NCBI GenBank assembly: GCA_965649825.1
Contig: OZ287696.1
Span: forward strand, 1,398,081 to 1,462,080
DNA: 64,000 nucleotides
Source: Penicillus capitatus
Taxonomy: Eukaryota > Plantae > Chlorophyta
Direction of reading: 5' to 3'
In this document: piece after piece, positions 5,662-39,730 of the stretch
How positions within the stretch are numbered: the first letter of the stretch is position 1
How the letters are laid out: every line of letters starts with the position of its first letter
The notes under the pieces: model-generated
Seen by the model: the letters and a program-made list of their open reading frames with translations, nothing else
What the model was told of the DNA's origin: nothing
The model's database searches: none
Position numbers and translations under genes: made by a program

Positions 5662-8451
5662 CTATCTTTGAAGCTCATCCAACTCTTCCTTCTTCGCCTG
5701 AAGCTCTTTTTTCTGCAGGACAGCCAAACGTCGATGACGGCAGAAGAGTGAGAGCGAAGAGTGACCGTGCTGTCAAGAGAAGTGTTGAGTCTCTTGATTT
5801 TTCTCTCTAGGCTTTCGATGGAGTCTTGTTTCTCTTCAATGGCACGTTTCATCTGATCTTCCAGATCTCCAAATCTGTTGTCCAGATCCATGATTTCTTG
5901 TTCCTTCTGAGAGATCTGCTCCTGCAATCCTCGACAGGTCTCTTCCAGCTCGACATTATGCTCAAGCAATGTCACTTCTTTTTCCTGTTTCTCTTTCAAC
6001 TGCTCCCGAAGGGCCTTTAGTTCTTGATCAGATGATTTGATTGTTTTCTGCAGTGTAGGGATTCAGTGGGAGGGGGTAGAAGAAGAGAGGGGGACCTCGG
6101 ATTGTGCCAAATGTGCTTTTGTTGTCTCGGATTCTTTGATGAGGCGACTGACAGACTGACTGATGGTTGTATTCTCAGCCTGCAATTGCACAGTTTCTTC
6201 AGTCATGGGAGGATTGGATGGAAAGGCACACACTTGTTTTGCCTTGACTTGTTCACGAAGAGTGCCATTCTCTTTTTTCAATCCTGCCAAACTTGATTGC
6301 ATTTCTGTAAGTTTGTCCTGCAACAGAAACAAGGCATACATCAGACGCTCGTTACTGGCATCGCTGCACCTCTTTGTCTTTCAACTGTTGCTGCAAGGCC
6401 GTGAGCTCTTCTGTGGCTGCTCCATTCACCCGATGCGCTTCCTAAGTCGCAGTCATTGTCAGACGATGCGCCATGAAGATCGTGGCGTAGGACTTCTGCG
6501 ACTGTCAATTTCTGTTGAAGAGCAAGAATCTGTGCAGCCTGTTCCTCTGCACGTTTCTCAGATGTTGCTGCCTTCTCCTACGATGAATGGCAGAACGATG
6601 TCGTCTATTGTTGTGGTGTCTGGACAGAAACCGTTGCTGTGGTATGTGCTTTCTTCGCGGATTCAAGTTCTGCCTTCTGAGCTTCACACGTCTCTCGTGC
6701 GGCGCTTTCAGATTTCTATGCATACAAAACATGACGCTGTGCCAGACAAAGCAATCCGTTGCCTGGAGACTCTCGAGCTGTTTCTTCAATGCTGCGGTTT
6801 CCCCCAGTGCTTGCTCTTTCGCCTCCTTCTCTTTCTGTAATTCCGCCTAGGCGACCAGAGACGGATCAATGCGGTTGCAAAAGGACAGTCCTTCAGCCAC
6901 CTCTTTCTGCTTAGTTTCCGCTACCGCCTGCTCTTTTGCTTCCTTTGCTTTCAGCAGTTCGGCCTGTACCATCAGCAGACGAATCCATACAGGTGTCGAA
7001 AAACGGTAAATCTGTCACCTCTTTCTGCTTAGTTTCCCCTGCCGCCTGCTCTTTCGCCGCCTTTTCTTTCTGCAATTCCGCCTGTACACCCAAAAGACGG
7101 ATCCATTTCACTGTGAAACAGAGGCAAATGTGTCACCTCTTTCTGCTTAGTCTCCCCAGCCACTTGCTCTTTCGCCGCCTTTTCTTTCTGCAGTTCCGCC
7201 TGCGAAGCGAAAGGCCTATTGAGTTCAGCTACCAAAACAACAGTCGTGTCACCTCTTTTTCTTTGATCTGTGTTTCAAGCAGATCAACTCTCTGTCTATG
7301 ATTTGTCAAAGATGCTTCCATCTCACTACTCTTACCCTATTATTCAATCGAACGCATACACTCGGCATCACAGGGGCACGAACGCACCAACAATGCCTTC
7401 AATTCTTCATTCTCTTTTTTCGCAGAATCCAAATGTTCTGAGGCCTGATCCGACAGCAACAGAGCTACGATCTAGATCATACCCTAACTGCCACTTGCTT
7501 TCTTTGCCGAAGCTTCTGTATGCTCCTGAGCTCGTTTCTCCACTTTGTTCTTTTCCTCTCTCAATCGAGATACATCGGCCATCAGCCCCTTAATCTCGTC
7601 ATCTTTTGTTTGAATCGATTTTTCGCGTTCCGAGAGCTTTTGTTGCAATTGGGACTTGATCATGTCATTGGCCGCTTTATGCCAACGAATGAAAGCACGT
7701 TTACCTGCCACGGTCCTCTCATCCTGTCGATTCTGAGCAAACAAGGCATCTATCAGTTTCGATGACAGATTCCTTCCCATCCGCTGTTGTCCACGTTTAC
7801 CTGATACTCTTCACTGATCTGAAAAATAATCTGTTTGTACACGGTGACTGAATTCTCGGCAGATGCAGCGATGCGTTGCTTCAGGTCGAAAACACAGCCA
7901 AGAAACTCTTGTCTTGCAGACTGCGCTGTCATACCATTCATGATATCCAGAGCTGTTGTCGCTTCTTCGCAGTAAATCGCTACAAACAGCAGCGTCCTGT
8001 CGATCATCTCAACTTCCTCGCAGCTTCCTCACCAATTTGAATCACAAAGGCACGAGACAACAAGGTGTGCAAACGCTCATCCAATCGCTCATTCTGCTCA
8101 TCGCTCTCTGTCGAACCACAAAAACCGGCACAACTCTTCTCGAAGAAATTCAGTTGGCGCGGTTCTTCTTTGAGTTTCTTCAGCAGAGTCCTGATCCAAG
8201 CTGTATTCTGTGGGTTAGAAGGTTGATGATATCTACCTGGCTTCTCGGACAGTTTCATTCGTCCATTGTGTCATACGATTGGTAACGTTGCATGTATTAT
8301 TCGCGAGTCCTTGACGAACGCGGAGGACGTTATCCGTCATGCCGACAAATAGGGCGCTAAAACATCTGAGACGCAGGGCGCTGTCGGCGTTGCGAAGCTG
8401 AACAGATGTCAGAGACGCGCACTCCGAACAAAACGCCGCAAGCGCATCCAT
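5662..8451 (-). CDS. Long multi-exon coiled-coil protein, unknown function
   Basis: ATG at 8451 ([11 protein letters not shown]...). Successive E/K/Q-rich exons end [16 protein letters not shown] at 5662. Contains the repeated 21-aa exons. Confidence 0.7.
6783..7252 (-). repeat. Tandem exon+intron repeat, ~118-bp period, 63-nt phase-0 exons (7199-7137, 7081-7019, 6963-6901, fourth unit from 6846)
   Basis: Exons encode [21 protein letters not shown] / [21 protein letters not shown] / [21 protein letters not shown] / [21 protein letters not shown]. Introns are 53-55 bp with GAG|GTG donors and AG|GC acceptors. Confidence 0.9.
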
Positions 8452-8744
8452 GGTTTGAACAAACGAACAAAACAAATAAAGAACGAATCGAGGAAAGGCG
8501 CAACGAACGCACTCAACCGAACGGCACCGCTGCACCGACTGGATGACTCATCGATGCGTCAACGATCGCAACACCACGGGGGGGGGGTACGACCGACGTC
8601 ATGAAGACGCAATTAATTTCTACATGCTCTACTGAGTTACTTACTACCCGCTAACAAAAGAGCATCCGAGGCGGACTGCCCGGTCGAATGGATAACCGAA
8701 ACCCTTCGTCACATGGACGACTTGCCAAAGCTTCTGTTGCATTC

Positions 8745-9584
8745 TCAGGATGACGACGATGTTGTGTTGTTGTTGTTGTTGCACTGGACCTGAGAAGAGC
8801 CAACCTGCTGGCATCTCTTCTTGGCCAATTCCAGTTTGTAAAATTCGAGAAATCTGCACAAGCATGGTCACCATCAGCATCGAGAAAGGCAGACGTAACT
8901 GTCCGTTGTGCTTGACGGTCTTCCAGCCATCGTCTGCCTTGCGGGATGGATTCACTAAGCGTTTGACGTGGATGGAGAAAGAGCTTGGGGATTCGAACGT
9001 GGTCCCTATCACACAGCATCTGTGAGATCTATCCATGCCCTTGTGTTCAACGACGACGTACCTTTCCATTCAATCCTGCCGTCGCTGCGAATATTGGCCA
9101 TTTCGATTTTTCCTCGGTACTCGAGCGAGAGGGCATTGTCTCCAGGGGAAATAAGTTCCTCATCGATGAGGGTCTTTAGAGATACAGCGAGGTTTCGAGG
9201 GGGATTCAAACGTCTTCTTTTGGAAGGAGTCACTTTTGCTTGAGCTTGTCGCTTCAACATCTCGTCCCTTGCCTTCATTGCCTACATCCATCCACTCGGC
9301 ACTCCATCCACCTCTACGCCATTCTCTCACACTTTTTGGATCAGTTGTCCATCGTCATCGGTGTCTGTTGCACTATCATCCTTATTGCTCGCCGCCGTGC
9401 TCAAGCGCAGTTCAGGCGCTGCCGGTTCTGTCTGAGCTGAGACCGTGGATGGGAGATTCTTGAAGGTCAGACGCGGTTGTGTCCCAACTAAAAATCGAAT
9501 ACGAGGCAATTGATGTTCCTTGGATTTATCACGAAATTTCTCGGCTCCAGTGTCTACAGGTACTGAAGGAAGACTTGAACTCAT
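8745..9584 (-). CDS. Small stand-alone RAMA-domain protein
   Basis: Spliced product contains SLKTLIDEELISPGDNALSLEYRG...IRSDGRIEWKG-TTFESPSSFSIHVKRLVNPSRKADDGWKTVKHNGQ, the pattern of the RAMA domain (MPND-like). Three GT-AG introns keep the frame. Confidence 0.75.
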
Positions 9585-10088
9585 ACTCCTAGCGAATGTC
9601 TTGAAAACGAAGGTCACGCGATTCTTGTGTCGTTGATGGCGGTTTCGATACAGAAGACTTTGAAAAACGTTCAACGATTTTTGCTATCACAACTGTTCGA
9701 TTTTGGACGCAGAGGCTCTGAAGAAAACACCGTGTTGTGACGAAGACTGCGACAATGACAAGACAGCGACCCGTCTTGCCTCTTCGCTACCTGATGCGGC
9801 TCACTCGACTAGTTGACCCCACCACTCCTGCCAATTTCGCATCCGATGTGCCAGACGCATGTCTCTCCATGCATGATGCTGGAGGAGGGATGCGGTTTCG
9901 CCGATGTGGTTGTGGGATTGGCAGAATTCTGACGCTTTGGTGAGATGCCGTGTTGACGTTCCTAGGTGCCTGTTCTGTCTAAGGGAGTCGTTCTTTGCGA
10001 GGGCGCGCCGTTATCTGATGATGGACAGTGGTGTGGCGGGACTTGCGATGGTGAATGTGGGAGATGTGACGTTTTGCATGGTCGCTGA

Positions 10089-13000
10089 ATGGGTTCGACG
10101 ACGAACAAGAGGTCGCGCAAATTCTCTCAGAGACACCTGCGAAAGGAAAGGACGCAAAGGAAGAAAGCGCAGTTTGTGAATAAGCAGCGCACCGAGCACG
10201 ATGCCAAACTGCACAAAGCAGTGCGTCTGGCGGCGGAACGGAATATAGAACGTGCGTATGACGCCTCCGGTGTCCTCTCTAACCACATCGACATCTCCTG
10301 ACTCTAGTGGTGTAGAAGGTGGATATCGACCTAAAGGGACGGGGTCCCATCATGACTTTTTAATGGCGACACATGTCCAAACAATGTGGATCTTTACGTT
10401 TTACAAAACTCTGTCGATATTCTCTTTGTAAGACTTTTCAATATTCGAACCGCGACCAGAACATCATGGTTTCGGAGCGTGAGTTTCTAACAACGGATCG
10501 TGGAGATGTGGAAACGGCCCTTAACGCGGCCGCTATGGTGGCAGACGGTTATAGGGCCAGGGTCGGAAAGGTCATGGATAGAGTGGAAGTCGGTTCGCCA
10601 CTATTTGACCTTATGCGCCAGGTTATTGACCGCACAGAACCTCACTTCAATGACCGCGACGCGTTCAACACCGCATTTATGGGAAGGGCAGCAGCCGTCA
10701 TGAACGTTTTTGCGGCGAACAAGACAGCAGTAGAAGACACAGATAAATGGAAAGTATTCAAGATGGCACTTCTGAGTCTGTGTTCAAACGCTGGGGCCAG
10801 TTCCGGGGAGAGACTTGCGTCCGCATCAAAGAGGAAAGCGGAAACATGGCTGCAATTTGCCGAGAGATTCAGCATTTTGGCTAACCAGTCAGGGCTACCG
10901 AGAGAGATGCAAGTGAAAACTTTTTTCAAAAAGCTTCCGACCCATCTGAGGAGGGCAATTGCGACCTTGCCGACGAACACGACCATGCCAGAGATGGTGC
11001 TAATGATCCGTAATGTGACGTTTTGGATGGGTTCATCCTCTGCCTCGGAGATTGACAGAGAAGCGATGGACGTCGATGCGGCTGATGCCGAATTCGGTAG
11101 TGAAACGACAAATGTCAACGCTTTCGGAAGAGGATTGCCACTTCGGGAACTGTGCGATGCGATGAGAGGGGAACTCTCAAGAAACCCACGTTTTGCCGGA
11201 ATAATGGAGGAGATTTTGGGACAGTGGCGCCAGCGTGGCACACCCGGTCAACAACGAGGACCACCGGGGCAACAGCGAGGACCGAGACGAACAGGGCCTA
11301 GGAGGCCATCAGGAGGCCGACAGTTTCAGGGAAACTGTTACCAGTGTGGGGAATTTGGACACTCGGCGAAGTTCTGTTCTCACCGTTACCCACAAGTTCG
11401 GGAAGCTCAACCAGTCCCTACACATAACCATTTTGAGGCATTGGCATCTTTTGACGAGGAGGAAGAGCAGGCGGAAGTTGCATCAATTCTCTCAGTAAGG
11501 CTGGGGAGAAAGGAACGTGCACAAGGAGGACACGGGACACAGTCGCCAATGAAAAATCACCACCCAAAAGGGGGAAACAAGAGCCCGAAAACATCTGAGA
11601 AGGCGGACGATACTGACATTAAGTTCATCAATTATCCCAGAGTGGACCAGACGACCCAAGACAAACCGGTCAAGTCTCGAGCTTCTCTCAAGGTGGCGAC
11701 ATACCTGTCCAATCGCCCTGAGAAAGAACAAGCTTTAGTGGACACGGGTGCAGAGGTTTCCCTTTTGCCGTTGGGATACTGCCAGCGCTGGGGACTGAAG
11801 GTCAGACGTCTTGAAAACACCCGGCTTCGTGGCTTCAATAACACGGTCAGTCGAGTAACGGGAGAGGTGACACTACCCACTCGAATTGGGGGTTGGAATC
11901 AGGCAATTCCGTACTACGTAACGGACGCCACGGATAAGGTGATACTTGGGTACTCTGCCCTTAAAAAGTTCGGACTAATGGTAGACTGTTCAAATGACTG
12001 CTTGTTGGGCGAGGATGGACATGTTGTTTTCTGCCGTTCGATCTCGTCAAACTAGCTCCGCCAGGTCAAGGCGCTTCGCCTGGCGTGATGCTACGAGTTG
12101 ACAGACAACTCGTCAAGGGGTCCGAACCTTGTTTATCACAGTCTTCTTTCGTTCTCAAGTTAGGGAGGACGGTTTTTCTTGCTCCCCTCGAGAATAGGTT
12201 GATCATTTTGCCTATAAGTGTTCATGGAGAAGGGTTACATGGTTTGTTTTCTTGCTGTTACCTTCGGGATGTCTCGGCCACCCCGATTCTGGGGAAGGGT
12301 GGTCGCATAACAGTCCGAGTGCATAACTTCTCTGACCGGCTGGTTACTTTGTCACCGAAGTTAAAAGTAGTACGTGGTCTTTTTTCAGGCCATGGACGTT
12401 TGAACCACGACCCATCTTTAGTCTCGCCTCTTCACATTGCCGTTTCCGAAGCATCTGAGCGCCCAGATGCCACTGGGGAACCACCTCTTTCTTCTTTTTC
12501 TGTGTCGCATTGGCTTTCTCTTTTCCCTTGTTTGTTCGAGGAAAAAATCTCGGCTTACGGTGATTCGCCTACCCTCCAAGAACTTCAAGTCCGGGCCGAT
12601 GAACTCGAGTGGCGGTCCCCGATTCCTTTTACAGACTCAGGAACTCCTCCCTGCCTGACAGATTGTTCGCCCGAAGCTGCTCGCTCTGAGATCACATCTT
12701 TGCTTTCGCGTGGTATTATTCGCGAGCTTTCTTACTCAGATCGTGGATTTTTCTCACCAGTCATTTTCCTCAAAAAACCCGATGGACGAGTTAGGATTGT
12801 CGTTGATTTCCAACGCCTAAATCGCTACTCAAACGTTTGGAACACGTACACTTTAGATACGCGCAATGCTGTTCGTGCCATAGATCCATCGTGGCGTTTC
12901 TTTACTGTTTTAGACCTTCGAGATGGTTATTTTCACATTCCAGTGGACTCTTCCCTCAGCCGTTTGTTTTGTTTTTCCTGTTTTGGTCGTCGTTTCCAAT

Positions 13001-16000
13001 TTACTACCCTTCCTCAGGGTTGGGCCTCTAGTGCCGGGTTTTTCAATGACCGTGTCCGCCGCATTTTGGGAGCAGCTCCGGGGAGCGCTTATTTTGACGA
13101 CATCATCGTCGGAGGTCGCGATCGCAAAACTCATGATCGTAACTTGCATACTGTCCTCTCCGTCTTGCAAGATGCCGGGATGCATATCAACCCTCGAAAG
13201 GTTCAATTCTGTCGTACATCGGTCAAGTATCTGGGGTTTTCGGTTTCCGGTGATTCTTATCATCAACGGGCCTATATTTCCTCTCAACTCGCTCAGTTAC
13301 CCGCAGTTACATCAAAAAAAGGCCTCCAACGCATCCTTGGAATTTTCACCGCCTGTCGCGGTACTTGCCCCGGTTTAGGTCTCGCTATTGCCCCTCTTTA
13401 TGCTCATCTTGGATCATCGGTACGCCAAGTTGACTGGAACTCAGTTCAAGACGTCGTTCGGTCAGTAGCAGCAGTTATTCTTCGTAACTCTCTTACCCTT
13501 TTACGTTGCGTTGAATCGCCGGTCTTTCACCTTGAAGTAGACTGGTCGGGTGCCGGAGCAGGTTACCTTCTCTATGCTGGCCATCGTTCCGAACACCGTT
13601 TGCTGGCCACAAATTGCCGAACGTTACGTGGGTTTCCCGTTAGTTCTTTCCTTGGAGAACTTGACGCGATCGTTTGGTGTCTTCAGGACACTATGACTCT
13701 TACTGCCGGCTGTCCAGTTCATGTGCACACGGATTCGCTTTCTGCTCTACAAAAACTTTCTGCTTGCGACGTTTGGTATAAGTCTCGATCAGACCTTCGC
13801 ATTGGCCGTCGTCTCGGATGGCTTTGGGCCAATTTCCCGTTAAACTCTCGTCTGTTTTTGCATTTCCTACCTTCTTCGGACAATTATCTCGCTGACTGCC
13901 TCTCAAGATGGCCCACGTTAGCGCAACGGAAGGAGGTAGATCTGAATGCCCTCGGAAGAGAAGATGGGTCAAGGAACAGGTTAAAAAGAATTGAAAAAGC
14001 ACATGAAGGTCATTGGGGTGTTCGTAAGACGCTCCTAAATCTGAAGAGAGACGGAGGATCTCTTTGGGCAGGAATGGAGGGCGAAGTGCGTAGATTTGTA
14101 GAAAGCTGTTGGAAGTGTCAAATATGGGGTCAGACTCAACACCGAGTGGATCTGGGAACAACAAAGGCAGATAATATTGGGGACGCAGTTGGGATAGATT
14201 TTGCAGGGCCTTTACCGACGCAAGATTCCGAAGAGCCGCGGTATGTTATACTTATGGTTGACTATCTCTCAAGATGGGTGGAAGCATGGGCGTGCATGAA
14301 ACCGAGTAGTGAAGCAGCCATTAAAGCCCTTTGCAAATGGCAGCAGAAGAATGGCGGGATTCGCATGTTGATTTCGGACAATGCACAGACGTGGCATTCA
14401 AAGGGCGTAAAAAAATGGTGCACAGAAAACGGAGTGATCCAAAGACTAACCGCGAGCTACATGCCAAAATCAAATGGCATGTGTGAGAGACAGATTGGGA
14501 TACTTAAAGGGAGGATGAAGAGAATGTCCACCAAGCCGCATGGATGGAGAAAGATTCTTACGAGAGCGGTGCGGATCATGAACCATTCAGTGAATGAGAC
14601 CACATTGCACAGTGCGGCGGAACTGAAAATTGGGACTTCGAGAGACGGAAAAAAAGTGGCTGAAAGAGTCCGTAAGAAATGGATTTGCGAGGCCCAGGAA
14701 AGGACAAGAAGACAGCAATGGTGCTCAAATGAGATGAGAAGGAAGAAGTACGGGAGAAGAAAACCACTTCGGACGGGGGATCACGTGTTGAAACCAAGAG
14801 CCGGGGCGGATACGGGGCCTTTCCTTCCACCATGGGATGATGAGCCGTGCGTTGTGGTGGAACCAATAGGTACACATATGTGGTTGATCAAGGGGCTGGT
14901 GAGCGGAAGAATAGCAAGAGTGCATGACGATCAAGTGAGACAGATTCCACAAAGGACCACAGCGCAGCTGGAAGCGTGTAGAAGGTGGATATCGACCTAA
15001 AGGGACGGGGTCCCATCATGACTTTTTAATGGCGACACATGTCCAAACAATGTGGATCTTTACGTTTTACAAAACTCTGTCGATATTCTCTTTGTAAGAC
15101 TTTTCAATATTCGAACCGCGACCAGAACATCAAGTGGCGGCGCAAAAGACGTCGGAGAAACGCGTTCGGGAAGAAACGGAGAATTTTGTGCAGAAATCCG
15201 CCGTCCTGTTAGATGAAGATTCTGATCTGGAAGAGATGGAAGAGGACGACGACGGAGAAGGGATGGACGGAATTGCTGCCTTCGATAAAATGACCCTTCA
15301 GCAGTTGGAATCCCTTCCTCTGGATCCACCACATTCGACAGCAGTGGAAAGCGGTCAGATCCATACCGCGAGGAAGCTGACACGAAAGGGATGATGGGCG
15401 CTCTGACTGTTAGGAACCAGTGAGGATGAGATGGATGTGGAACAGCAGATTGCTCTCTACAGAGAACAGCTTTCCCGTTTAAAAGAGCAGGATCCTGAAT
15501 TCCACCAGTACCTGCAGAAAGCAGATGAGCAACTCTTGCAGTTCCAGCCGCCATCTGACGAAGAAGTGGATGATGATGTGACACCTTCAGCCAAGACGCC
15601 ACAAGGTTTGGGCGTTTAAGAGACAGGGACAGGAGGATGGCTACGGTTGGTTTGGTTTCCAGATAGCGTTGGTCGCGAATTGAAAGAGGAATGTGTGGAT
15701 CAGTGGTGCAGAGATGTCCTCATTGCAAACCCATCTATCGATAGTCTGCGCTTCCTTATGACAGCATATGCATTCGCCTGCCACTATGGCGAAGAGACCG
15801 AAAGGAATGTAGCTGAGGATGCTCATCGGCTGCTGCAATTCAGCAATTCCACAGTTTACACCAAATTAATGATCTTTGTTCTCAAGGCTCTTCTTTCCTT
15901 CGTCGACAATCGAAGGCTAAACTCGGTTTTTAGGAAGGAGATGGTGTTTTCCGGAGATTCCTTAGACTACACAAGAAACAGCATGTCAAGAAGGGTGACG

Positions 16001-17737
16001 TCGTGAAAGCAACAAAGTAACCACGACTGTTGGATGAGGGTGCCCAGATGCGGTGCTTTTCAGGGAATGTCCCGATGCGGCCCTACAGCTCCAACGCTTT
16101 CTTGCCAGCACTTGTCGTTTACTGAGACAACCGCTGGACGACAACATTCTTGCTTTTGTTCTCAGAAAGATGCGATCGTTTGTAGTCTTGATGGAAGGAA
16201 TGCCAGCTAAGATCTCAAAGCTCTTTCTCAGAGCCGCGCTCGAAATCTTCTCATCCGCGTCTCCAGCACCTCGTCTACAGTCTGTACTGCTGATTCGTGA
16301 GATGGTACTGCACCATGGGGAGAACACAGTCCACCTCTGTCTTAAAGTCGGCCACAAACGAACTCGAGGCCATTCCTGACTGCTGGTCTGTCAGGGAGTC
16401 TACAAGTCATTCTTGTCATCTTGCAGCACGGTCGATCGAGAGACACTGCCTCAGCTGCATTTCATGGGAACATGTGTCGTGGAGATCTACAGCCTCTCAC
16501 AAGAGAGTGCTTACCAAAACGCCTTTAAATTCATCAAAGATCTGGCCATCGATCTCCGCGATGCAATTGTCGCAAAGAACAAGGATGCAGCAAAGAAGGT
16601 GCGTTTCTGCCTGTCCAGAACAAAACGATGTGCGGTTCAGGTGTTTTGTTGGAGATTTGTTCATGGTTTGGAGCTTTGGGCACAATTGGTCGGCGCCTTG
16701 TTGGGCAAAGGAGACATCCAACAGCTCACTTACCCCGTAGCCCAACTACTGACAGGGGTAGCACGCTTTCAGGATCACATGCGGTACCTGCCACTGCGTT
16801 TGAGACTCGTCGCTGCTGCCAATCGCCTGTCAGAAGTGACGGGCCTCTTCATTCCGGTGGCCTCGTTGCTGATCGGCATCCTCTCCTGGTCCTATCTCCA
16901 GAAAAAACCAACCATGACTGGAAACGAAAAGTGCCCAAACATGGCGTTGTGTCTCAGTGTTGGCGAGAAAACGTTGAGGAATGGCCTCTTTCAGAGCGAA
17001 GTGGTGGAACAGGTAAGCAGCTCTGCCCTTCGCTATCGCATTTGCTATGCCGACAACTCTGGTCAGGTCTTTGAACTTTTGGCTCAGCACATGGCTCTGT
17101 TCTCACATTCCATTTCGTTTCCCGAGACATCTCATTGGATCACCGTGCAGCTAAAGAGATTTACAAAGTCCGTTCCGTTTCCAAGGTGCTCTTACGAATA
17201 TCCTCTCTCCTTTACACTTAATGGCTTGGCTTAGCTACAAGAGTGGCGCCATGCAGTTGGTGGCAGCCATCCGATCCAGCTCAGAGAAAGTCCTTGCCAG
17301 AAGAATGCTGGTCACATTCAGTCCACGCGACATTGAACAAGTGCAACAGTTTCAGCTCGAAGGAAAAGCAGAAGGAAAGGTGTCGCTTTCTCGCTGTTGA
17401 GCTTTCGTTTCTAAAACCATCTGTCTGTCAGAGTGCCCTTGAAGTTCTGCACGAACAGTTGGTAAAGAAGAGAAGCCAAAGACAGTCCCTTCAGACGACA
17501 GAGAGCATTACTCTGCGAGAAACGGAAGCCTCACCTGCCGAACGACCTCAGCAAACCAAACCCATGCGCAAGAAGATGCATAATGTCACGCTAAGTGATG
17601 CAGAGACGCTGACTTCGGATGAAGGCGACTTGAGAGAAGAAGAACTGGAGGGCCTCGATGTGCCTGTCATGGAAGATGTCTTGCAAGACTATGTCTTCTC
17701 CGAAGACGAAGAAGAGGTGCAACATGCTGTGAATTGA
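10089..17737 (+). CDS. NOC2: Nucleolar complex protein 2 (NOC2), interrupted at the intron-1 acceptor by an LTR retrotransposon
   Basis: Exon 1 10089-10251 MGSTTNKRSRKFSQRHLRKE... After the element: AAQKTSEKRVREE, YREQLSRLKEQDPEFHQYLQKADEQLLQF, DAALQLQRF, QESAYQNAFKFIKDLAIDLRDA, YLPLRLRLV, SHSISFPE, acidic tail EDVLQDYVFSEDE. Confidence 0.9.
10311..10466 (+). repeat. 5' LTR (156 bp)
   Basis: TG...CA ends; base-by-base identical to 14977-15132. Confidence 0.97.
10373..12055 (+). CDS. gag: Gag-protease polyprotein (start either ATG 10373 inside the LTR or ATG 10466 at the LTR/PBS junction)
   Basis: Zinc knuckle CYQCGEFGHSAKFC; aspartic protease ALVDTGAEVSLL ... VILGYSAL in the same frame; TAG stop at 12053-12055. 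Confidence 0.9.
   Translation: MSKQCGSLRFTKLCRYSLCKTFQYSNRDQNIMVSEREFLTTDRGDVETALNAAAMVADGYRARVGKVMDRVEVGSPLFDLMRQVIDRTEPHFNDRDAFNTAFMGRAAAVMNVFAANKTAVEDTDKWKVFKMALLSLCSNAGASSGERLASASKRKAETWLQFAERFSILANQSGLPREMQVKTFFKKLPTHLRRAIATLPTNTTMPEMVLMIRNVTFWMGSSSASEIDREAMDVDAADAEFGSETTNVNAFGRGLPLRELCDAMRGELSRNPRFAGIMEEILGQWRQRGTPGQQRGPPGQQRGPRRTGPRRPSGGRQFQGNCYQCGEFGHSAKFCSHRYPQVREAQPVPTHNHFEALASFDEEEEQAEVASILSVRLGRKERAQGGHGTQSPMKNHHPKGGNKSPKTSEKADDTDIKFINYPRVDQTTQDKPVKSRASLKVATYLSNRPEKEQALVDTGAEVSLLPLGYCQRWGLKVRRLENTRLRGFNNTVSRVTGEVTLPTRIGGWNQAIPYYVTDATDKVILGYSALKKFGLMVDCSNDCLLGEDGHVVFCRSISSN
10467..10478 (+). promoter_or_regulatory. Primer-binding site, tRNA-iMet-like
   Basis: TGGTTTCGGAGC directly after the 5' LTR; 10/12 match to the common iMet PBS TGGTATCAGAGC. 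Confidence 0.7.
11998..15000 (+). CDS. pol: Pol polyprotein: dUTPase-like?-RT-RNase H-integrase (-1 frame relative to gag; frame open from 11998)
   Basis: RT FTVLDLRDGYFHIPV, LPQGW, YFDD, YLGF. RNase H EVDWS, GELDAI, HTDS, NYLADCLSR. IN HEGH..CWKC, GIDFAGP, SDNA, NGMCER, C-terminal GPF. Stop TAA lies inside the 3' LTR. Confidence 0.93.
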   Translation: MLVGRGWTCCFLPFDLVKLAPPGQGASPGVMLRVDRQLVKGSEPCLSQSSFVLKLGRTVFLAPLENRLIILPISVHGEGLHGLFSCCYLRDVSATPILGKGGRITVRVHNFSDRLVTLSPKLKVVRGLFSGHGRLNHDPSLVSPLHIAVSEASERPDATGEPPLSSFSVSHWLSLFPCLFEEKISAYGDSPTLQELQVRADELEWRSPIPFTDSGTPPCLTDCSPEAARSEITSLLSRGIIRELSYSDRGFFSPVIFLKKPDGRVRIVVDFQRLNRYSNVWNTYTLDTRNAVRAIDPSWRFFTVLDLRDGYFHIPVDSSLSRLFCFSCFGRRFQFTTLPQGWASSAGFFNDRVRRILGAAPGSAYFDDIIVGGRDRKTHDRNLHTVLSVLQDAGMHINPRKVQFCRTSVKYLGFSVSGDSYHQRAYISSQLAQLPAVTSKKGLQRILGIFTACRGTCPGLGLAIAPLYAHLGSSVRQVDWNSVQDVVRSVAAVILRNSLTLLRCVESPVFHLEVDWSGAGAGYLLYAGHRSEHRLLATNCRTLRGFPVSSFLGELDAIVWCLQDTMTLTAGCPVHVHTDSLSALQKLSACDVWYKSRSDLRIGRRLGWLWANFPLNSRLFLHFLPSSDNYLADCLSRWPTLAQRKEVDLNALGREDGSRNRLKRIEKAHEGHWGVRKTLLNLKRDGGSLWAGMEGEVRRFVESCWKCQIWGQTQHRVDLGTTKADNIGDAVGIDFAGPLPTQDSEEPRYVILMVDYLSRWVEAWACMKPSSEAAIKALCKWQQKNGGIRMLISDNAQTWHSKGVKKWCTENGVIQRLTASYMPKSNGMCERQIGILKGRMKRMSTKPHGWRKILTRAVRIMNHSVNETTLHSAAELKIGTSRDGKKVAERVRKKWICEAQERTRRQQWCSNEMRRKKYGRRKPLRTGDHVLKPRAGADTGPFLPPWDDEPCVVVEPIGTHMWLIKGLVSGRIARVHDDQVRQIPQRTTAQLEACRRWIST
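14977..15132 (+). repeat. 3' LTR (156 bp)
   Basis: Identical to the 5' LTR and followed by TSD AGTGG. Confidence 0.97.
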
Positions 17738-17979
17738 CTGCGAGAAAGACATATTTAGATGGGAATGATGTCTCCGTTTGTACGATTTTTGTAACTCCTG
17801 ATCTTCCTCGTACCTCGTTGACGACAATGCCCAGCGACAGCAACTGGATCCCCAGGGGAAAGTACTTTCCAAGCAGCAACGCAGAAAAGAGAAACGCAAA
17901 GCTCTGGGGCCGAGAAAGAAAAAGACAACAAGATAACATCTGACATGTTAACACACACCCACACTTTTGTCCCATAACT

Positions 17980-18105
17980 GATGTATCTCACTCATGCTGA
18001 GTGATCTCTCCCTGGAAGCCGAGAGAGAGTCGATGTAGCTGTCATGAGCGACGGTTATCTGAGATTTCCAGGGAGAGATGTCACACAATATGAGTGAGAT
18101 GCATC
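17980..18105. ncRNA. Intergenic ~126-bp imperfect fold-back (candidate small-RNA precursor or MITE relic)
   Basis: Left arm GATGTATCTCACTCAT..GTGATCTCTCCCTGGAA pairs with right arm TTCCAGGGAGAGAT..ATGAGTGAGATGCATC; includes perfect 14-bp and 11-bp stems. Confidence 0.45.
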
Positions 18106-18219
18106 TTGTCGTGAGGCGTTGCTCGATAATGTCGTCGTCCGTGACAATCTAAGGCACCGAACAACCTTCATTCACATAGTGCAGTGATTCTGACGGTCGT
18201 TTCATTGAATGAGCGAATC

Positions 18220-20574
18220 ATGTTTGCCAAGTTAACAGCTCTCGTTTCCGGTTCCAATACTTTGCCTTATGAACTCGACGACGTCGAAGGCGAAAGAACG
18301 GCAGGCGGATGGCGTCACCACCGAGCGACGAGCAAAGCAGACAAAACGCCCGTTTCCCTGTTCAAGTATACCTTCTCCCAGACAGACGACCCTCGAACGA
18401 CAGAAGCGGCAAAGCACGGCATCAAGAGTCTGAGAACAGTATCGCATTGCCTCTTCGTGCTCTTCCTGATCATCGTGATGCATCATCTGTCCAGCTTCGC
18501 CATCCCAATGTCCTGATCTTCAAAGACTCACTCGAAGTTGAAGAGAAGAGCAGTACAACACTCTACCTGGTGACAGAACCTATTCAGCTTCTCTCGACTG
18601 TTCTTCGGGATGGAGATCTCTCAGGCCATCAAAAGCAAGAAACGGCCGTTCTCTTGTGCGTCTCCCGCACGCACTTATCCTGTATGTGTCTTCTAGAAAT
18701 GCGTATCTTTCAATGGGGCTGCGGCAGGTGACGTGTGCTTTGAGCTTTCTGAACAATGACTGCCATCAGGTCGCTGAGCCGCCCTCATAGGCAGGCCAAC
18801 AGACATGTGTGTATAGGTGCATGGAAACGTGTGTTTGTCGACAATTGTCGTCGCAGAGAATCTGGATTGGAAACTCAGTTGCATGAACACGTTGTCAGAA
18901 CACGCGTCTCTCGGAATGTCTATTCTTCGTGACAGCTCTGCGTTGCTGAGCGATGTGTACAAATGTCCGGAGTTTGCCAAGGGAGAATGGGAGAGCTTGG
19001 CTGATGGTCCACCATGGGCAATCGACAGTTGGGGTCTGGGATGTCTGATTCGAGAGGTCTTTGGCAATGGGCCACTGGGATCACCTGCCGATCTCAGAGA
19101 TATCTCCTGCATTCCGGAAGATCTGCTCAAAGACTATCAACGCCTTCTCAACTCTCAGGGACAAAAACGTCTCAATCCACAGCGACTGCTGAAGAACAGG
19201 TATCTGCATAATCAGCTGGTGGAAGTCGTGAGCTTTCTGGAATCTCTTGCCGTGAAAGAGGCGACAGAGAAAAGCACGTTCTTTAAGAAACTGACGCAGA
19301 GTCTATCAGAGCTGCCGGATTTGGTGGTCCACCAAAAGATCTTGCCGATGGTGATCGATGCGTTGGAATTCGGCAGCGCTTCGCCCAATGCACTGAGCTG
19401 TGTTATGAAAATTGCCGATGGAATGGATGCAGAGCAGTTTCAGTCATCCATTGCCCCAGCCATCATCCGTTTCTTCAATTCATCTGACAGGACCATTCGC
19501 CGTGTCCTTCTGGAGAATATCGACAAGTTTGGTGATCGATTGCCGGCCGCTTTGATCGATGAGACCATCTATCCTGCCTTGACGAATGGCTTCTCGGATA
19601 GCAATGCCTATTTAAGGGAGCTCACGCTGAAATCTATGCTGCACTTTGCAGGAAAGCTCAGTCAGAAGACACTGAATCAATCTCTGTTGAAATTCTTGGC
19701 ACGGCTGCAGGTCGATCCCGAACCATCGATCCGGGCCAACACGACAGTGCTTTTGGGATTCATTGCAGATCACTTGGGGGAAGCATCGTGCAAGCGTATT
19801 CTACTCAATGCCTTTAGCAGGGCACTGAAGGATCAATTCCCGCCTGCAAGACTGGCGGGACTGAAGGCATTAGTGACAACCCGAAAGTACTATACCCCTG
19901 CCGAAGTGGCCAACAAAGTCATACCTTGTGCATCGCCTTTGTGCATCGATGGAGTAGAAGATGTACGAAATCAGGCGCTGACCTGTTTAGAAACGTTTGT
20001 TGAAGTACTGCGAGAAAAGAGTGCGACTGAAGAAGGCGATGAAGGCCAAGTGCCTGTATCCAATCCCAAAACCACGTCAAAGAGTCAGAACTACGTTTCC
20101 TGGGCTGTGTCCTCTTTGGGCTTTTCACAGATCACCGAACCCGAAACGAAATCGGAGCCGAAGTTGGAGAAGAGAACAGAGACACGCGTGGCAGAGCTGG
20201 ATATGCCTTCGCACACATCAAGTCCACTAAAACTGAGCGAAAAATCGCACGATGCCTTTCGAGACGCCTCTTCTCGTGCGCTCTCATCCAACAGCAGTTC
20301 AGAAGACGATCGATGGGATCTGGGAGACGATGACGATTTTGGCGAAATAGATGTGAGACAGACAAGACCGTCAACAAAACCCGCATCCAAATCGACCGAT
20401 CAAGGCTCGTCAAATGATCATAGGGGTGTCTTTCGGGCGCCGAAAGAAGAGCACGATGTATGGGATGACTTGGGCATGAAAGCAGCAATGCCGACCGATT
20501 CGCCGCCAGTTCAGAGAAGAAAGCCAAAAGGTTCTGGGAAGCCCATGAAACTGGGCGCCAAGAAATTGAGTTAA
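18220..20574 (+). CDS. SCYL1: SCY1-like pseudokinase (SCYL1/CTEXP/NTKL) with HEAT repeats
   Basis: MFAKLTALVSG, LRHPNVLIFKDSLE, LYLVTEP, AIDSWGLGCLIREVF, IPEDLLKDYQRLL, RELTLKSM, DPEPSIRANTTVLLG, RALKDQFPPARLAG, tail KPMKLGAKKL. Confidence 0.92.
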
Positions 20575-20589
20575 GCAGAGGTTACTTGT

Positions 20590-22069
20590 TTATTCTGGGC
20601 GTTTTCTGAAGTCATGGACATTGACGCTGTGCATCGCTTTCAAAGAATCCAGCTTCGTCTGCCACTCGCCAACAAACTTCCCATACTTCAGCAACAGCGC
20701 GTCCTAAGCAGCGAACCGATCGGAAGCTTTTCTGTCCGTCCATTGACGTACTTTCTGATTCACCTGCTTTCTGAGGATTTCGATTTCCTTGCGCAGAATA
20801 GGGCGATCACATTATTTGATGTGACCCGTCGGTGCGTACCTGCCGCAACACGGAAGCCGGGTCTTGGCGCTTCACCGCGAGTTGTTCTTTCAATTGCTGC
20901 ACGTGATCGTCGAATTGCGCGGCGCTCTCGTTTGCGATACTCTGTCCATCGACGGCGTTTAACAGAGATTCCATGTCGCTTTCTAACTGGGCCAAAATTT
21001 CGATAGGCCCCATCACGCGTGGCGCCGTTTCTTCTTCCCCTTTGATCATTTCTTCAATCATCTTCTCGTCTAAACTTTCCCCCTCCATTTCTGCTGGCAA
21101 AAGGATTGAGTGTGAATCTCTCTTCCAATTCGACTCTGCCTTCGTCAATGTACAGTGGCGGAACGAGCTAAATGAACGCCGACGGTTCCAGTTATGACCG
21201 AATGACCCGAATGGATCATGATCGCTTACGTTGCCGGATTTGGCACTCTTGACCAAAGGCGTGTTGGGTGGAAGAGGTTTGAGCTCTTCATCCGAGAAGG
21301 CTGCGATCTTTATCGGATCGATTTCGAGCCCCATAAACTCATTAATTTTGAAGACTCTGAGGTTGCTGATGTTTCCGAGCGCCTTGTATCTCACTTTTCC
21401 GCCATCCGCATAGAAATTCGTGATCTCGCCGCCCGGTTCGACCTGGATAAGGAGGGCGATTGGTGTGGCGCTGGGAGGCGTGATGGGACTTACGGCATAC
21501 CAACCGACCTTCTTGATGCCAGAATCGTAGAAGAGAACGCCATTTGCATCCACCATGAATGTCCGGCCTTTCTCGTCTTGTGCAACCCGGTAGAGCATTT
21601 TGTTCTTACCCATGACATATTTGATATCTTTGCGGAACTTTTTTATTCCATTCTTCGTCTTGCGCGGCACCATGACGCTGGCAATGACCTCTTCCTCGAT
21701 CATCTCCGCTACAGAAACGTCACATCAAACGGGAACGTGTGAGGAGTCGGTGACATTTGCGGAACTGCCGATAGATGAGACCAAGAGGCACGCCCACGAG
21801 AAACGGGAAGAGTCTTCTTCGTTTGATCCCAAAGATCTTCGGCTGGGCATCTCACTCAAAGTGAGAAGCTCGTTAGAAACTGCCAAAAGTGTGACCTCCA
21901 TCTCGTCGTCATCCTCCGGCGGTGGAGGAGGCATAGGCGGTGGCGGTGGTCCCTTCGGAGTACGAGGATCAGGCGCCGAACGTATCGTCCGTATAGGCTG
22001 ACGTTCCGCATTGCACATGACACGCGCGGAGAGGCGATGTCGCCACCTGACCGAACAGACACGTGCCAT
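20590..22069 (-). CDS. Hypothetical protein with transit-peptide-like N-terminus and Pro-rich segment
   Basis: MARVCSVRWRHRLSARVMC...PPPPPMPPPPP; long ORF 20807-21703; last exon DALLLKYGKFVGEWQ...KRPE* ends at 20590. Family not recognised. Confidence 0.6.
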
Positions 22070-22152
22070 CGCCCGTTCCTTCCGTGAGGGTTTGGACAAG
22101 TGGATTTAATGAACGCATCTCGACACAGTTGCCATTATCTATCATTGCAGAA

Positions 22153-23349
22153 TCAGAGAGACAGTAATCTCGTCGAGACAAAACGGCTCATTCCATAAAC
22201 CGTGTACAGAAAGAGAGCCATGCCCCATAACATAGCAAGGGCGCATTTCAGGCGTATGTGGAATGGAAAATCCATCGTCTCGTGCTCTTTCCATTCAAAG
22301 CGCTCCAATCCTGCAACCCAAAGAAGAGTGCGTCTCAGCTGACGGCAAAAGAGTGACCTTTTGGGTTTTTGTGTGAGAAGACGGCAGCCCACTTTGCATC
22401 CCACTCTTTCTGAACGACTTGTAAAAAATCTTCAAATGTTGCGTACTCTTTGGGATCGATAACATCTGAGTATCCTGCAATGATGGAGCATCCAAATTGC
22501 ACACGCCACTTCTTCTCTGAGAAGGGCAGTTCTTTGTTCTTGGCGATCACGATCTGACAGGGAAGCTTGCGTAGATAGGCATAGATAAGCATCCCTTTCT
22601 TCAAGGGCAATGAAGTGTCTGCCGTATTTCGATGTCCTATATCTCACTCTTTTGCACGGAGGATAGCTTTCGATCGCACACACCTTCGGGATAAACGATC
22701 AGTCCACGAAACGGCGTCTCCTCTAGACACTTGTCCAGCCACAGATTGAACTTCTATAGCAGCCATGCCTATGGATGGAGGTGTTTGGCAGTCGTCCTCT
22801 TGCCTCTTTGTTGCGAATGGCATTGCGTCTGAAGAAGAGCATGGACTGTCCAACATAACCGTAGAGCATGAACACAGGCAATGCCACAAAGACCATCATA
22901 CTGGAGCGCCACACAGATCTCAGACGCGTGACGCGTTGCTGGATTCTATCTGACCGTGACAGGGCACAGCAACTTCCACATGTCAAATACTGTTCGACAA
23001 AGAAATCCGACCACGATCGATGATTGCACTGTCACATCAAAAAGAGTGAGAAGATCACGAGATGCTATGTACAAACCAAGTAAACGCAGCGCCCTTTGTT
23101 ATAGATTCTGCCAGAATCGACCAGATAGTATCGGAGTCTGAAGAACTTTGTCATCATTTCGGACCTGCACAGAGCCATGAGAACATCGCCGTCATAGAGC
23201 ACCTAGCCGTGCCATTTAACGAGGTCTGCTCGGGGTGTGGTGAAATTCAGAAAATCGACAAAGTAAAAGAAACCCGAAATCTGCACACTCCAGAACAAAA
23301 AGAAGAGCACTGCAAAATAGATCAATCGGTGAAACAGCGTCGATAGCAT
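22153..23349 (-). CDS. PlsC/LPAAT-type acyltransferase with N- and C-terminal hydrophobic helices
   Basis: Spliced exons give the catalytic motif CNHRSWSDFF (HX4D), LIVYPEG-HRNT, LPLKKGMLIYAY..LPCQIV; N-terminus MLSTLFHRLIYFAVLFFLFW. Confidence 0.75.
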
Positions 23350-23422
23350 CGTGTGTCCGACGTTCGAAGATGGACCTGATGGATGGATGACATGAGACGC
23401 AACGTGACGCTTTGCATTGTAG

Positions 23423-26400
23423 ATGACGCCGACGCGATCACGACAGTCGTCACGCCCACGGGCGTCATCTCTTGTACGAAAAGATCGAGCCTCAATCCAA
23501 AGACAAGAAAGCATGATCCCAATGCCATACGAGCAATCAGCATTGCTGAATGGTCTCGTACCTAATCGGACAGAAGACACTATCATGCAGTCATGTGAAG
23601 AGCAGGGATCAGAGTTCCCGCTTAAGAAATGCACATTATTGCGTCAGGCAAGCATGGTCAAGTAGATGATCATCGGATGTGGTTCTGTATAGAGAATAGG
23701 CGACGTGGAAGATTTTTATCCGTATCTAAAAGTGGAGGAGTTGGTATTGGTGGAAAGCGAGATGCAGCACCTTGCCGAAGTGCAAGATTTGACAAGACTG
23801 AAGAAACTCTATCTCTATTCGAACAAAATTCAGTCATTCGATGGAATCCAACACCTGTCCTGTCTCGAAGTGAAGGCCGTTGAGCGGTCTGGGTCTGGCT
23901 TGCGAGAGAGTTGGTTGGTAGGTGCTTTGGCTGTCGGACAACGGAATACGGAATATGTCCCAAGTGGATGCTCTGCCCGTAACGCTCAAAGAGCTGTGCC
24001 TTTCGGGCAATCCGATCACCAGGATCACACAAAGTCTCACACATCTGAAGAACCTGCAGTCACTCTTTCTGTCAAAAACATCCATCTGGAATCTCATGGT
24101 GCTCTCTCTATATGGAGCAACGAAGGCCATCGATGTTGGCTATGTGTAGGACGTCGAAGTGCTGAAACAGTTAGAGGCGTTGAAGATTCTGCGCTTTTCG
24201 GATATGATATGGGGACAGAGTCCGATCGTGCGCTTGCCGAACTACAGGACAGTCATATTGTTCCATTTGCCACACTTGACCATGCTGGATGGCATGTCCC
24301 TGACACAAGAGATGCACGCCATGGCGACAGCAGAGGCAACAAAGCATGTGATTTATTACTCGCTTAAACAGCGGGAGTTGAGAGAGACCTTTAGAAATGT
24401 TCGAAAAATGGCAGATGAGAGAAAGCCAGTACGTCGTTCGACGCTTTTCCAGAGTCTTCTGCTGTCACACTGCTGTTTTGTAGATATGCATTATGCCATA
24501 TGAAAGAGCTTATAAATCTTTGCTGAGTCAATACCGATCGGAGAAACGGGACGCCGAACAGGTGGCGGCGTGCGATGTGCCTGACAACGATCCTATGGAT
24601 CGACAACTGCAGAGTAAACGATTGAATGAGATGGCTCAGTGTATCCACCATCTTCGAGATAAAGTGCCACTTCGAAGATCTCTCTTTCCCTTGGAGTGGC
24701 CTCTGACCATGATGCAGTTGGAGGACATTGAAGTTTCCTATGGCCAAAGACTGTCCGTCTGCCGAAATTTGCTCGATGCGCAACTGTGGACATTCGATGT
24801 CGAATGCCGGACAGGAGGAAACCTCACAATCGTCGATTGTGTGGGAGGAGATGGAGGATGGCAAGAGTGCCGTCGCTGTCTCGGTCACCTGAGCGCGGAT
24901 GGGCAGCACGACAGAATAGTCATCCATCGAGTTCGGAAGATCATCAACCGCCGCTACGAGACATGGTCGGCTTGTACACAGGATGCTTTTCTGTACTCGG
25001 ACGGGTGATCATGTTCAGGGAAGAATCTGAAAAGCCCGTTCTGACCAGCGTCGTGGTTTTATGCCCCGGAGACGCAGACGTTGAAAATCTTAGTGGTTGG
25101 GATGTTATCTGTGGGGAGGAAGGACCTGTGTTGTTGGCGTCTTCGCTATCAGTATTTGAGGAACGGACGACAAGGAATCGATCGATTGGCATCGACAGCA
25201 GTTTGGAGGTCAAGAAAGCAGCACTGTCTGAGGATGCCCGATCGCTCAACGAGACATGTGTCTTAGCTTGAAGTATTTCTGTTCCGGGTGCAAACAAGAG
25301 TGATCGAAGCGACAACTGTCTCTCAGCAGAAGGACGATTCGCCCGATCCAGTCTCCTCCCATTTCTCAGTACCATCTAAATCGCTTTATGCAGAAACTGT
25401 TCCTAACATGTGTTAGGAGATGGCGAGATTGCGGATGCTCCGAGACGACGAAGAGCTTATTCCTCTGTTTATTGTCAACTGTCAACATTCTGCAGTGCCC
25501 TTAGCAGTCGATGATGCATCTGTCCCGTTGCCAGATGAGAATCCTGAGTATGCCTCCTCAAGTCATCGATGCCGTCTCCAGCATTCACGGCGACTGTTCA
25601 TCGAGGTGGTGGTCTGTTTACCTGTCTCCTTGGATCGGCAAAGGAGGACGGACGCTCTCATCCTGTCCTCTTCTCAAGGAAGCTTCGAAATTTGTGCCTG
25701 TCGAAGATTCGACGGAAGTGTCGGACACTCCCTCGTTCAATGAACCGTTCGAGCGGCTTCTGTCGCCGCCTTCTTCCAATCTGACCCATCTCAATCTGCA
25801 CAGCTGTGGACTCGAAAAGATGGAGGTCATGTTGTTGTGCCTCTGCGTGTGTTCTGAAAGACTGCGTGGTGTCTGTTGGGTGATCTAGGATAGAATCTCT
25901 CGGGATTGACAAAACTGCAGATCCTGATTCTGAGTTTCAATCGACTCGAGCGCCTGGATGGCATCGGATGCCCTCCGCTGCTTCAGAAACTCGACTGCAG
26001 CCATAACTCCATTCGAGACACTCACGGGATCGAAGTGCGCCATCACGATACCGAGTCTCATGAACCAGGTCCATTTGTGTCAGCACCTCAGCCGACTATC
26101 GGATTTGGATATGGAGTGGAATGCCATTCGTTCCTTCACTGATGTGGAGAACCTTACCGAGCTGAGAAAGCTCTCAACCTTGAAGCTCCTCGGAAATCCG
26201 CTCTTTGCTGATGTCTTTGTGTACGGCAACAGCGTCCTCTGCAACAACTCCTCCTCTCAAGTGGACGACCAGCAGAGCATGAATGTCCGCTGCCGTATGC
26301 GAGAGCAGACCCACCTCTCACTTCGTCCACTCCAATTGAGTGCGTTCACGCTCATCACTCTTTCTTGCTTTGGTGCCATTCGACGATGCATCAGGCGATG

Positions 26401-27935: not shown

Positions 27936-28128
27936 CGGGTGCCTGGAGTGTTTTTATGGCGATGGCGTCGTGCTGTGTTTATGCGTGGACGGTTTGCATA
28001 GAGTATTGGCGTATGCGTCGTTCACAGTGGTCATGCGATGTTGACAGTCAACCGCCCGTCGCCGCCATCGTTCAGATGAACGTCATCTCCGACCGAATCG
28101 CGTTTGCACCGTCGTTGATTCTCAAACA

Positions 28129-29812: not shown

Positions 29813-30102
29813 TAGGGTGCCGCAGGTTGATGGATGTCGACTGCCCTTCTGCTCTGCAATAGTTCTCTGCAATTGATGAAGATGCTGAACAACTCGTCTG
29901 AATATCATAACTCTTGGCGGTGCACGATATTGAATGTTCCTTTCTCTGCACTCCACGTCGGATCCGAGAAGTGTCGAACAGTTGTAATCAATCCATTGAC
30001 GAACGGCTCAATGCATTTGAAGAACGCATCTCGCTCGTCCTTCTGCAACACAAAGATGTCTCACTCGGTGTGGATATCAGGCAGAGATGTCTCGACGCAC
30101 AT

Positions 30103-35590: not shown

Positions 35591-35814
35591 TGCACGTTTT
35601 TGGTCGCGTCGAACTGCCGAGAACGATTGCTTGATGTGACGTTTCGACCGCTCGATTAATCGATCGATTCATCAATCAATCGACAACAAGTGAAAGCGAC
35701 GTGTTTGAGCAAACGTGTGTCTGGAGAACCCTTTCAGGAAAAATTCGATGTCGCTGTCCATTCTGTCCATGCCCATACACAAGGACTGTCACGTCAGATC
35801 TCAGAAATTTCTTT

Positions 35815-39620: not shown

Positions 39621-39730
39621 ATAGCACTGCTGGGGAAAAAACAGACCGCAACGCTGGGGAAGGAAGACGCTTTTCGGATGACAAGGAACTGTTCTATTGA
39701 AATGAGAGTCGGGATCCCATCATTTGAAGC

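Follow-up and report, generated by a model that had tools for sequence, protein, structure and literature searches.

The NOC2 locus and its insertion

We analysed a 64,000-nucleotide (nt) stretch of DNA from the green alga Penicillus capitatus (contig OZ287696.1 of assembly GCA_965649825.1, positions 1,398,081 to 1,462,080, forward strand), hereafter the window. Within it, a complete Ty3/gypsy-type long terminal repeat (LTR) retrotransposon of 4,822 nt, in sense orientation, lies exactly on the splice acceptor of the first intron of a NOC2 homologue, and a public assembly of the same species holds the same gene without the element on a divergent haplotype. The features of the locus, in window coordinates, are the following (TSD, target-site duplication; ORF, open reading frame; a slash within letters marks a junction).

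10089-10251, + strand: NOC2 exon 1 (MGSTTNKRSRK...AAERNIE), with a phase-1 end, from the ORF and gene model; the N-terminus aligns with Bryopsis NOC2
10252-10307, + strand: ancestral intron 1, 56 nt, GTGCGT...CTAAC...CTGACTCTAG, wholly kept upstream of the insertion
10306-10310, no strand: upstream TSD copy, AGTGG, which is the acceptor AG plus the first three bases of exon 2
10311-10466, + strand: 5' LTR, 156 nt, TG...CA, from direct-repeat detection
10467-10479, + strand: primer-binding-site-like block TGGTTTCGGAGCG, TGG-initiated, 13 nt, kept in all nine family copies
10466-12055, + strand: ORF1, gag and aspartyl protease, 529 amino acids (Pfam gag-asp_proteas and Asp_protease_2)
11998-15000, + strand: ORF2, pol, with reverse transcriptase, RNase H, integrase H2C2 and integrase core (Pfam); first ATG at 12088
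14957-14976, + strand: conserved block CCACAGCGCAGCTGGAAGCG, a candidate plus-strand primer site, kept across family copies
14977-15132, + strand: 3' LTR, 156 nt, TG...CA, identical to the 5' LTR, from direct-repeat detection
15133-15137, no strand: downstream TSD copy, AGTGG, with its AG at 15133-15134 within TCAAG/TGG
15135-17737, + strand: NOC2 exons 2-11, with nine introns of 42-60 nt and the stop codon at 17735-17737, from a hand-built model and the Bryopsis alignment

The host gene is a NOC2 homologue. With the flanks joined across the element, the model starts at ATG 10089, has ten introns, all of 42-60 nt, and encodes 770 amino acids that match the Pfam Noc2 family (PF03715, E=5e-81, residues 384-672). 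The exon model was built by hand and checked against Pfam and against Bryopsis NOC2, which is its closest named relative (38% identity over 89% of the length); the alignment with the Bryopsis protein starts at residue 1, crosses the junction of exons 1 and 2 without a gap and agrees with at least six further junctions. No high-identity NOC2 match was returned by the protein-database search. A fewest-introns dynamic-programming model was also tried for this gene and set aside, as it gave implausible introns of 100-126 nt. Nine of the ten acceptors are YAG. The remaining one, the GAG at 16038, marks a less certain junction, and so does the GC donor at 15887, although the latter is supported by alignment: it opens intron 4 (15887-15933), an apparent GC-AG intron whose junction VLK/EGDG is backed by the Bryopsis protein. 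TGTAA, the usual green-algal poly(A) signal, occurs at 17790 in the 3' untranslated region, 53 nt past the stop codon. Noc2 is essential in yeast, and its homologue is presumably essential in this alga as well.

Structure of the element

By its structure the element is an LTR retrotransposon: TG...CA repeats are bounded by a TSD, and the corresponding empty site, described below, carries a single AGTGG. Its organisation is far beyond chance. The two LTRs are 100% identical over 156 nt; repeat detection reported 157 nt, of which one extra G is a chance match beyond the LTR. TTTTTAA is found at LTR position 47 and TGTAA at position 117 (10427-10431 in the 5' LTR), and the 3' LTR contains a CAG at 15123-15125 that is in frame with NOC2. 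These coordinates and the identical LTRs confirm an earlier interpretation of the locus made from the letters alone (the sequence-only reading), which had placed an LTR element precisely on the NOC2 acceptor with a TSD, AGTGG, composed of the acceptor AG and three exon bases.

The blocks next to the two LTRs are conserved within the family. Next to the 5' LTR lies the TGG-initiated block listed above; a tRNA scan of the window found no tRNA gene to match against it. The block that adjoins the 3' LTR ends in CAGCTGGAAGCG (GGAAGCG at its very end), is conserved in nine of nine copies and is not a purine-pure tract. The gag ATG (10466-10468) spans the boundary between the LTR and the primer-binding-site-like block, with the A closing the LTR and the TG opening the block, and the gene calls in every family copy start at this straddling ATG.

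ORF2 lies in the -1 frame relative to ORF1, with an overlap of 58 nt in which both frames are open. Its Pfam matches follow the order RVT_1 (242-386), RT_RNaseH (481-553), Integrase_H2C2 (632-680) and rve (705-794), of which the RT_RNaseH match is weak (E=0.0021, below the Pfam cut-off). The Pfam scan of pol detected no chromodomain and no other known targeting domain. An integrase that follows the reverse transcriptase, together with a protease in ORF1, is the Ty3/gypsy domain order, and the TG...CA LTRs, the 5-bp TSD, the putative TGG-initiated primer site and the -1 gag/pol overlap are likewise Metaviridae-like. In contrast to typical Ty3/gypsy elements, the present one has very short LTRs (156 nt), no detected chromodomain and a gag ATG that straddles the LTR/primer-site boundary. 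Relatives with more than 60% identity were found in two metagenome assemblies only, and the element therefore probably represents an undescribed algal family.

An empty-site allele on a divergent haplotype

As comparison data we used ERZ25074695, a public long-read metagenome assembly from the same species. When the EPSP synthase encoded near NOC2 in the window was used as the query, a protein with 99% identity was found in this assembly, encoded on a contig of 844 kb that aligns collinearly with the window (99.8% identity). The look-up of a window ORF near NOC2 matched two ERZ25074695 contigs. One of them, ctg340460_36x, which is the 844-kb contig, carries the filled allele and matches the window without a single difference over 16.9 kb, element included. 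The other, ctg316118_21x (19.4 kb; L006), carries an empty allele, in which window positions 23629..15130 are joined straight to 10310..5978. The junction reads CTGACTCTAGTGGCGGCGC, in the context ...CATCTCCTGACTCTAGTGGCGGCGCAAAAG..., with a single AGTGG and a 56-nt intron exactly as predicted. Exon 1 is identical in sequence in the empty allele, and the same 56-nt intron 1 is followed directly by TGGCGGCGC. Thus, the typical 56-bp intron that the sequence-only reading had reconstructed by removing the element and one TSD copy exists as a real allele, and the empty site for which it had proposed to look is present in ctg316118_21x.

That the junction is an assembly artefact or a chimaera carries next to no probability: the TSD is perfect over 5 bp, no part of the element is missing, another assembly record has the filled locus without any change, and the empty counterpart is precise.

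The empty and filled haplotypes are separated by 43 single-nucleotide polymorphisms (SNPs) over 12.8 kb, or 0.33%. When the exon model is applied to the empty allele, its NOC2 coding sequence is intact, and neither allele contains stops or frameshifts. Within the coding sequence, the alleles differ at 6 nt and in 3 amino acids (C288R, Q425P, N451D); at residue 425 it is the empty allele, not the filled one, that shares the Bryopsis residue. The exonic SNPs that mark the filled haplotype are T16041/C16043, A16121, A16499/A16501 and A16578.

By its coverage label, the empty haplotig has a depth of 21x, about half that of three large collapsed contigs from the same sample (36x, 39x and 42x) in which the element family occurs. 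Between the window and the 844-kb contig, all 42 differences fall into three blocks (27506-30748, 34208-35928 and 39411-39971) with a divergence of ~0.5%, and the sequences are identical elsewhere. This block pattern looks like haplotype switching, as is expected if two assemblies each collapsed the same two haplotypes but chose their phases differently. These data would be consistent with two haplotypes in roughly equal amounts, between which the insertion was assembled as a short bubble, and a diploid heterozygote is the likeliest arrangement. The heterozygous insertion that the sequence-only reading had listed as a fallback is therefore the version that we favour, since an intact empty-site allele lies on a divergent haplotype of the same sample at roughly half coverage.

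The same observations bear on a somatic or heterokaryotic origin, in which the insertion would have occurred in one nuclear lineage of a coenocytic thallus and would be complemented by the other nuclei. The top named matches of the EPSP synthase are from Caulerpa lentillifera (72%) and Neomeris dumetosa (70%), so that the host is probably a siphonous-type ulvophycean. That the nearest named relatives are coenocytic Bryopsidales and Dasycladales, and that the element is clearly active, both suit such an event. However, the recovered empty allele sits on the other haplotype, with its 43 SNPs, rather than on the filled haplotype minus the element, and the roughly half dosage of the filled allele is high for a somatic event. 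We therefore regard a somatic insertion as quite unlikely.

Predicted splice outcomes of the filled allele

The insertion point follows the AG and TGG, so that the 56-nt intron keeps its donor, its branch-point-like motifs (CTAAC/CTGAC) and its acceptor unaltered. Three splice outcomes were compared by translation. Splicing to the original AG at 10306-7 reads ...NIELV followed by a stop, which lies two codons on, inside the LTR. Splicing to the LTR CAG at 15123-5 reads ...NIEQHQVAAQ, where L is replaced by QHQV, and splicing to the duplicated AG at 15133-4 reads ...NIELAAQ, the wild type. The translations agree with what had been stated before from the letters, namely an immediate stop, about three added residues and an exact restoration.

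The presence of a second in-frame AG before an unchanged exon follows from the TSD, which consists of the acceptor AG and three exon bases. The regenerated acceptor is thus an automatic by-product of the duplication and involves no adaptation. From a density of ~3.5 introns per kb of gene, we estimate that ~1% of random insertions would land on an acceptor in this way.

Could the filled allele nevertheless be functional, with the 56-nt intron and the element removed together as one intron of 4.87-4.88 kb through the acceptor at 15123-5 or 15133-4? Both downstream acceptors are in frame, the LTR end has branch-point-like motifs (CGAAC, GCGAC) 10-20 nt upstream, like some NOC2 introns, a haploid alga would need a rescue of this kind, and introner transposons are known to co-opt a 3' AG from the TSD (PMC11282704). 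Against this, the original AG with its CTAAC/CTGAC motifs remains unchanged at 56 nt from the donor, and the ten NOC2 introns are all 42-60 nt long, which suggests recognition across short introns. Moreover, the site that would restore the protein exactly is a weak AAG, as opposed to YAG at 9/10 NOC2 acceptors, the sense-oriented LTR carries TGTAA, and the intact allele makes a rescue unnecessary. Taken with these points, removal of the element as a giant intron appears distinctly improbable. A transcript junction 10251-15135, which had been proposed as a check, is not diagnostic of the giant intron because the intact allele yields the same junction.

Age, activity and other insertion sites

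A second copy of the element (L007) is present on another contig, of 1.17 Mb, in the same genome. Its interior is identical to that of the window copy over 4,510 nt, and the two copies differ by 1 nt in 4,666 nt, a difference that lies inside the LTR. This change (T/C at LTR position 100) occurs in both LTRs of L007, as would be expected if reverse transcription of a single RNA template renewed the two LTRs of each copy. The difference between the copies (1/4,666) is more than ten times below the allelic divergence of 0.33%; therefore, the transpositions took place long after the haplotypes had diverged, and one would expect the insertion to be polymorphic. The insertion is young and the element family is currently active. 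LTR divergence was also considered as a clock and rejected, being uninformative at 156 nt, where the 95% bound is ~1-10 Myr depending on the rate.

We compared nine insertion sites of the family and its nearest relatives from two assemblies, a small sample. Each is given below with its TSD and context.

Window copy, TSD AGTGG: NOC2 intron-1 acceptor
L007, TSD TGCCA: between convergent Lon protease and ANAPC8 genes
L001, TSD GATAC: coding context not recognised
L009, TSD GCAAG: coding context not recognised
L010, TSD CCATG: within a coding exon
L002, TSD GCCCT: coding context not recognised
L003, TSD GAATG: coding context not recognised
L011, TSD GTGGA: 63-bp tandem repeat
L012, TSD ACATG: coding context not recognised

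Contexts were classified by Pfam searches on ORFs spanning each site, which resolved L010 alone. L010 (ERZ26696514 ctg303793, 4276/9109) is a 96%-related copy that lies antisense within a 276-codon ORF. When this ORF is rejoined, a sulfotransferase domain match spans the site (E=4.5e-14), and the copy is probably a second gene knock-out by the family, to judge from this match. A codon-usage coding score based on ~3,000 window codons was discarded as a means of classing the sites; it was too weak, the sulfotransferase ORF itself being unflagged. The minisatellite that hosts the related element L011 consists of 63-bp units at 3963-4339 and 9097-9163 and is open in one frame.

The sequence-only reading had suggested that the family might target, or be retained at, 3' splice sites, and had proposed tabulating the TSDs of its copies in search of enrichment at acceptors. 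In its favour, one of the nine copies sits at an acceptor, and the surroundings of L002 and L003 superficially resemble short GT...AG introns. The tabulation turned out otherwise: the nine TSDs share no motif, an acceptor context was seen at none of the 8 other sites, and the family has entered a sulfotransferase ORF, a 63-bp tandem repeat and the space between two convergent genes. With no targeting domain detected by Pfam in pol either, targeting of or preferential retention at 3' splice sites or introns is, on this small sample, very improbable.

A probable null allele, sheltered by an intact one

Given the observed insertion and its young age, together with the empty allele and the divergence between the two haplotypes, we consider it likely that the window carries a null allele of recent origin that is shielded by an intact one, the likeliest setting being a diploid heterozygote. 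An active Ty3/gypsy-type element would have integrated recently into one haplotype, where the 5-bp staggered cut happened, it seems, to cover the acceptor AG of NOC2 intron 1. With the donor, branch-point-like motifs and acceptor unchanged, and with no NOC2 intron outside the range of 42-60 nt, use of the proximal acceptor is expected; transcripts of the filled haplotype would then splice the intact 56-nt intron, join exon 1 to the LTR and end in ...NIELV and a stop. Since the LTR is sense-oriented and carries TGTAA, transcripts that read into the element probably terminate at this poly(A) signal in the 5' LTR. The filled allele is most likely null, and NOC2 function, in what would be an essential ribosome-biogenesis gene, would come from the other haplotype; the presence there of an intact allele at roughly equal dosage would explain why the filled allele persists.

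Several points weigh against this reading. The mis-splicing and early polyadenylation of the filled allele are predictions from its letters, and the coverage figures are those in the contig names alone. The macroscopic thallus of Bryopsis is haploid (bioRxiv 10.1101/2023.11.22.568388), and the two alleles could come from two haploid genotypes that occur together; the filled genotype would then have to keep NOC2 function somehow.

If two free-living haploid genotypes were present, the filled one might be rescued by a NOC2 paralogue or by an N-truncated Noc2 initiated from the 3' LTR, with M86 as the first in-frame ATG. Besides the haploid thalli of Bryopsis, it speaks for this arrangement that land plants have two NOC2-family genes, that REBELOTE is among the NOC2 search matches and that a promoter reading into exon 2 could lie in the 3' LTR. 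On the other hand, a coverage of about one half and a short alternative contig of 19 kb suit a heterozygous bubble better than a mixture of strains, and LTR-derived transcripts would bear an out-of-frame upstream ORF (15039-15212). On balance, two haploid genotypes seem unlikely. Still another version, in which a haploid alga lives on the filled allele alone while its spliceosome skips the perfect proximal acceptor, uses the LTR or TSD AG and so removes an intact retrotransposon of 4.9 kb, is decidedly improbable; if true, it would show a retrotransposon caught in the course of becoming part of an intron in an essential gene, set against the usual introns of 42-60 nt.

Relation to introners and to other insertion alleles

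A documented parallel comes from introner elements (e.g., IE1 of Micromonas), in which a transposon becomes an intron and takes its 3' AG from the TSD (PMC11282704; PMC9860276). The likeness lies in the TSD AG that abuts the exon, at which excision would restore the frame exactly. However, introners are short and non-autonomous, occur in hundreds to thousands of copies at introns and bring or create both splice sites, whereas the present element is autonomous and 4.8 kb long, landed at the end of an existing intron and created none. At its ends, a 3' AG comes from the TSD and a CAG from the LTR, and the old donor, 4.9 kb off, would need to serve as the 5' site, with the old acceptor in between. 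Of the 8 other copies, one was placed in a coding exon, another in a minisatellite and a third between genes, and none can be shown to be an intron; in this respect the element lacks the defining property of introners.

Functionally, the closest analogies are probably found in maize and mouse. Varagona, Purugganan and Wessler (1992) reportedly described maize waxy alleles in which intronic retrotransposons are partly spliced out, and Maksakova et al. (2006) are reported to have described intronic IAP/ETn insertions of the mouse that lead to premature polyadenylation and aberrant splicing. Alleles of this type are typically recessive. As in those cases, a sense-oriented LTR element lies in or at the edge of an intron, where truncated or chimaeric transcripts would be expected, with leaky splicing at best. 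Yet the maize and mouse hosts routinely splice kilobase introns, whereas every intron seen here is 42-60 nt, and leaky removal of 4.9 kb is less plausible for that reason.

The value of the case is mainly corrective, in that an acceptor insertion that looks designed is the geometric result of a target-site duplication in a young insertion polymorphism. What is new is limited to a member of a retrotransposon family and a neat natural allele. The locus brings to light a family of Ty3/gypsy type, probably undescribed and active at present, in uncultured siphonous-type green algae. The filled allele is a natural knock-in, marked by its allele, with which the handling of a kilobase-scale insertion by a short-intron spliceosome could be studied. 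The giant intron, unlikely as it is, would if true bear on the conversion of transposons to introns.

Other observations in the window

Genes for the U4 and U5 snRNAs are adjacent, 73 nt apart, at 44792-45107 on the minus strand (Rfam scores of 106.7 and 68.5 bits). At ~6898-7202, the alignment of the empty contig gives offset self-matches of 84% identity with a shift of ~118 nt, which indicates a short tandem duplication upstream of a RAMA-domain gene.

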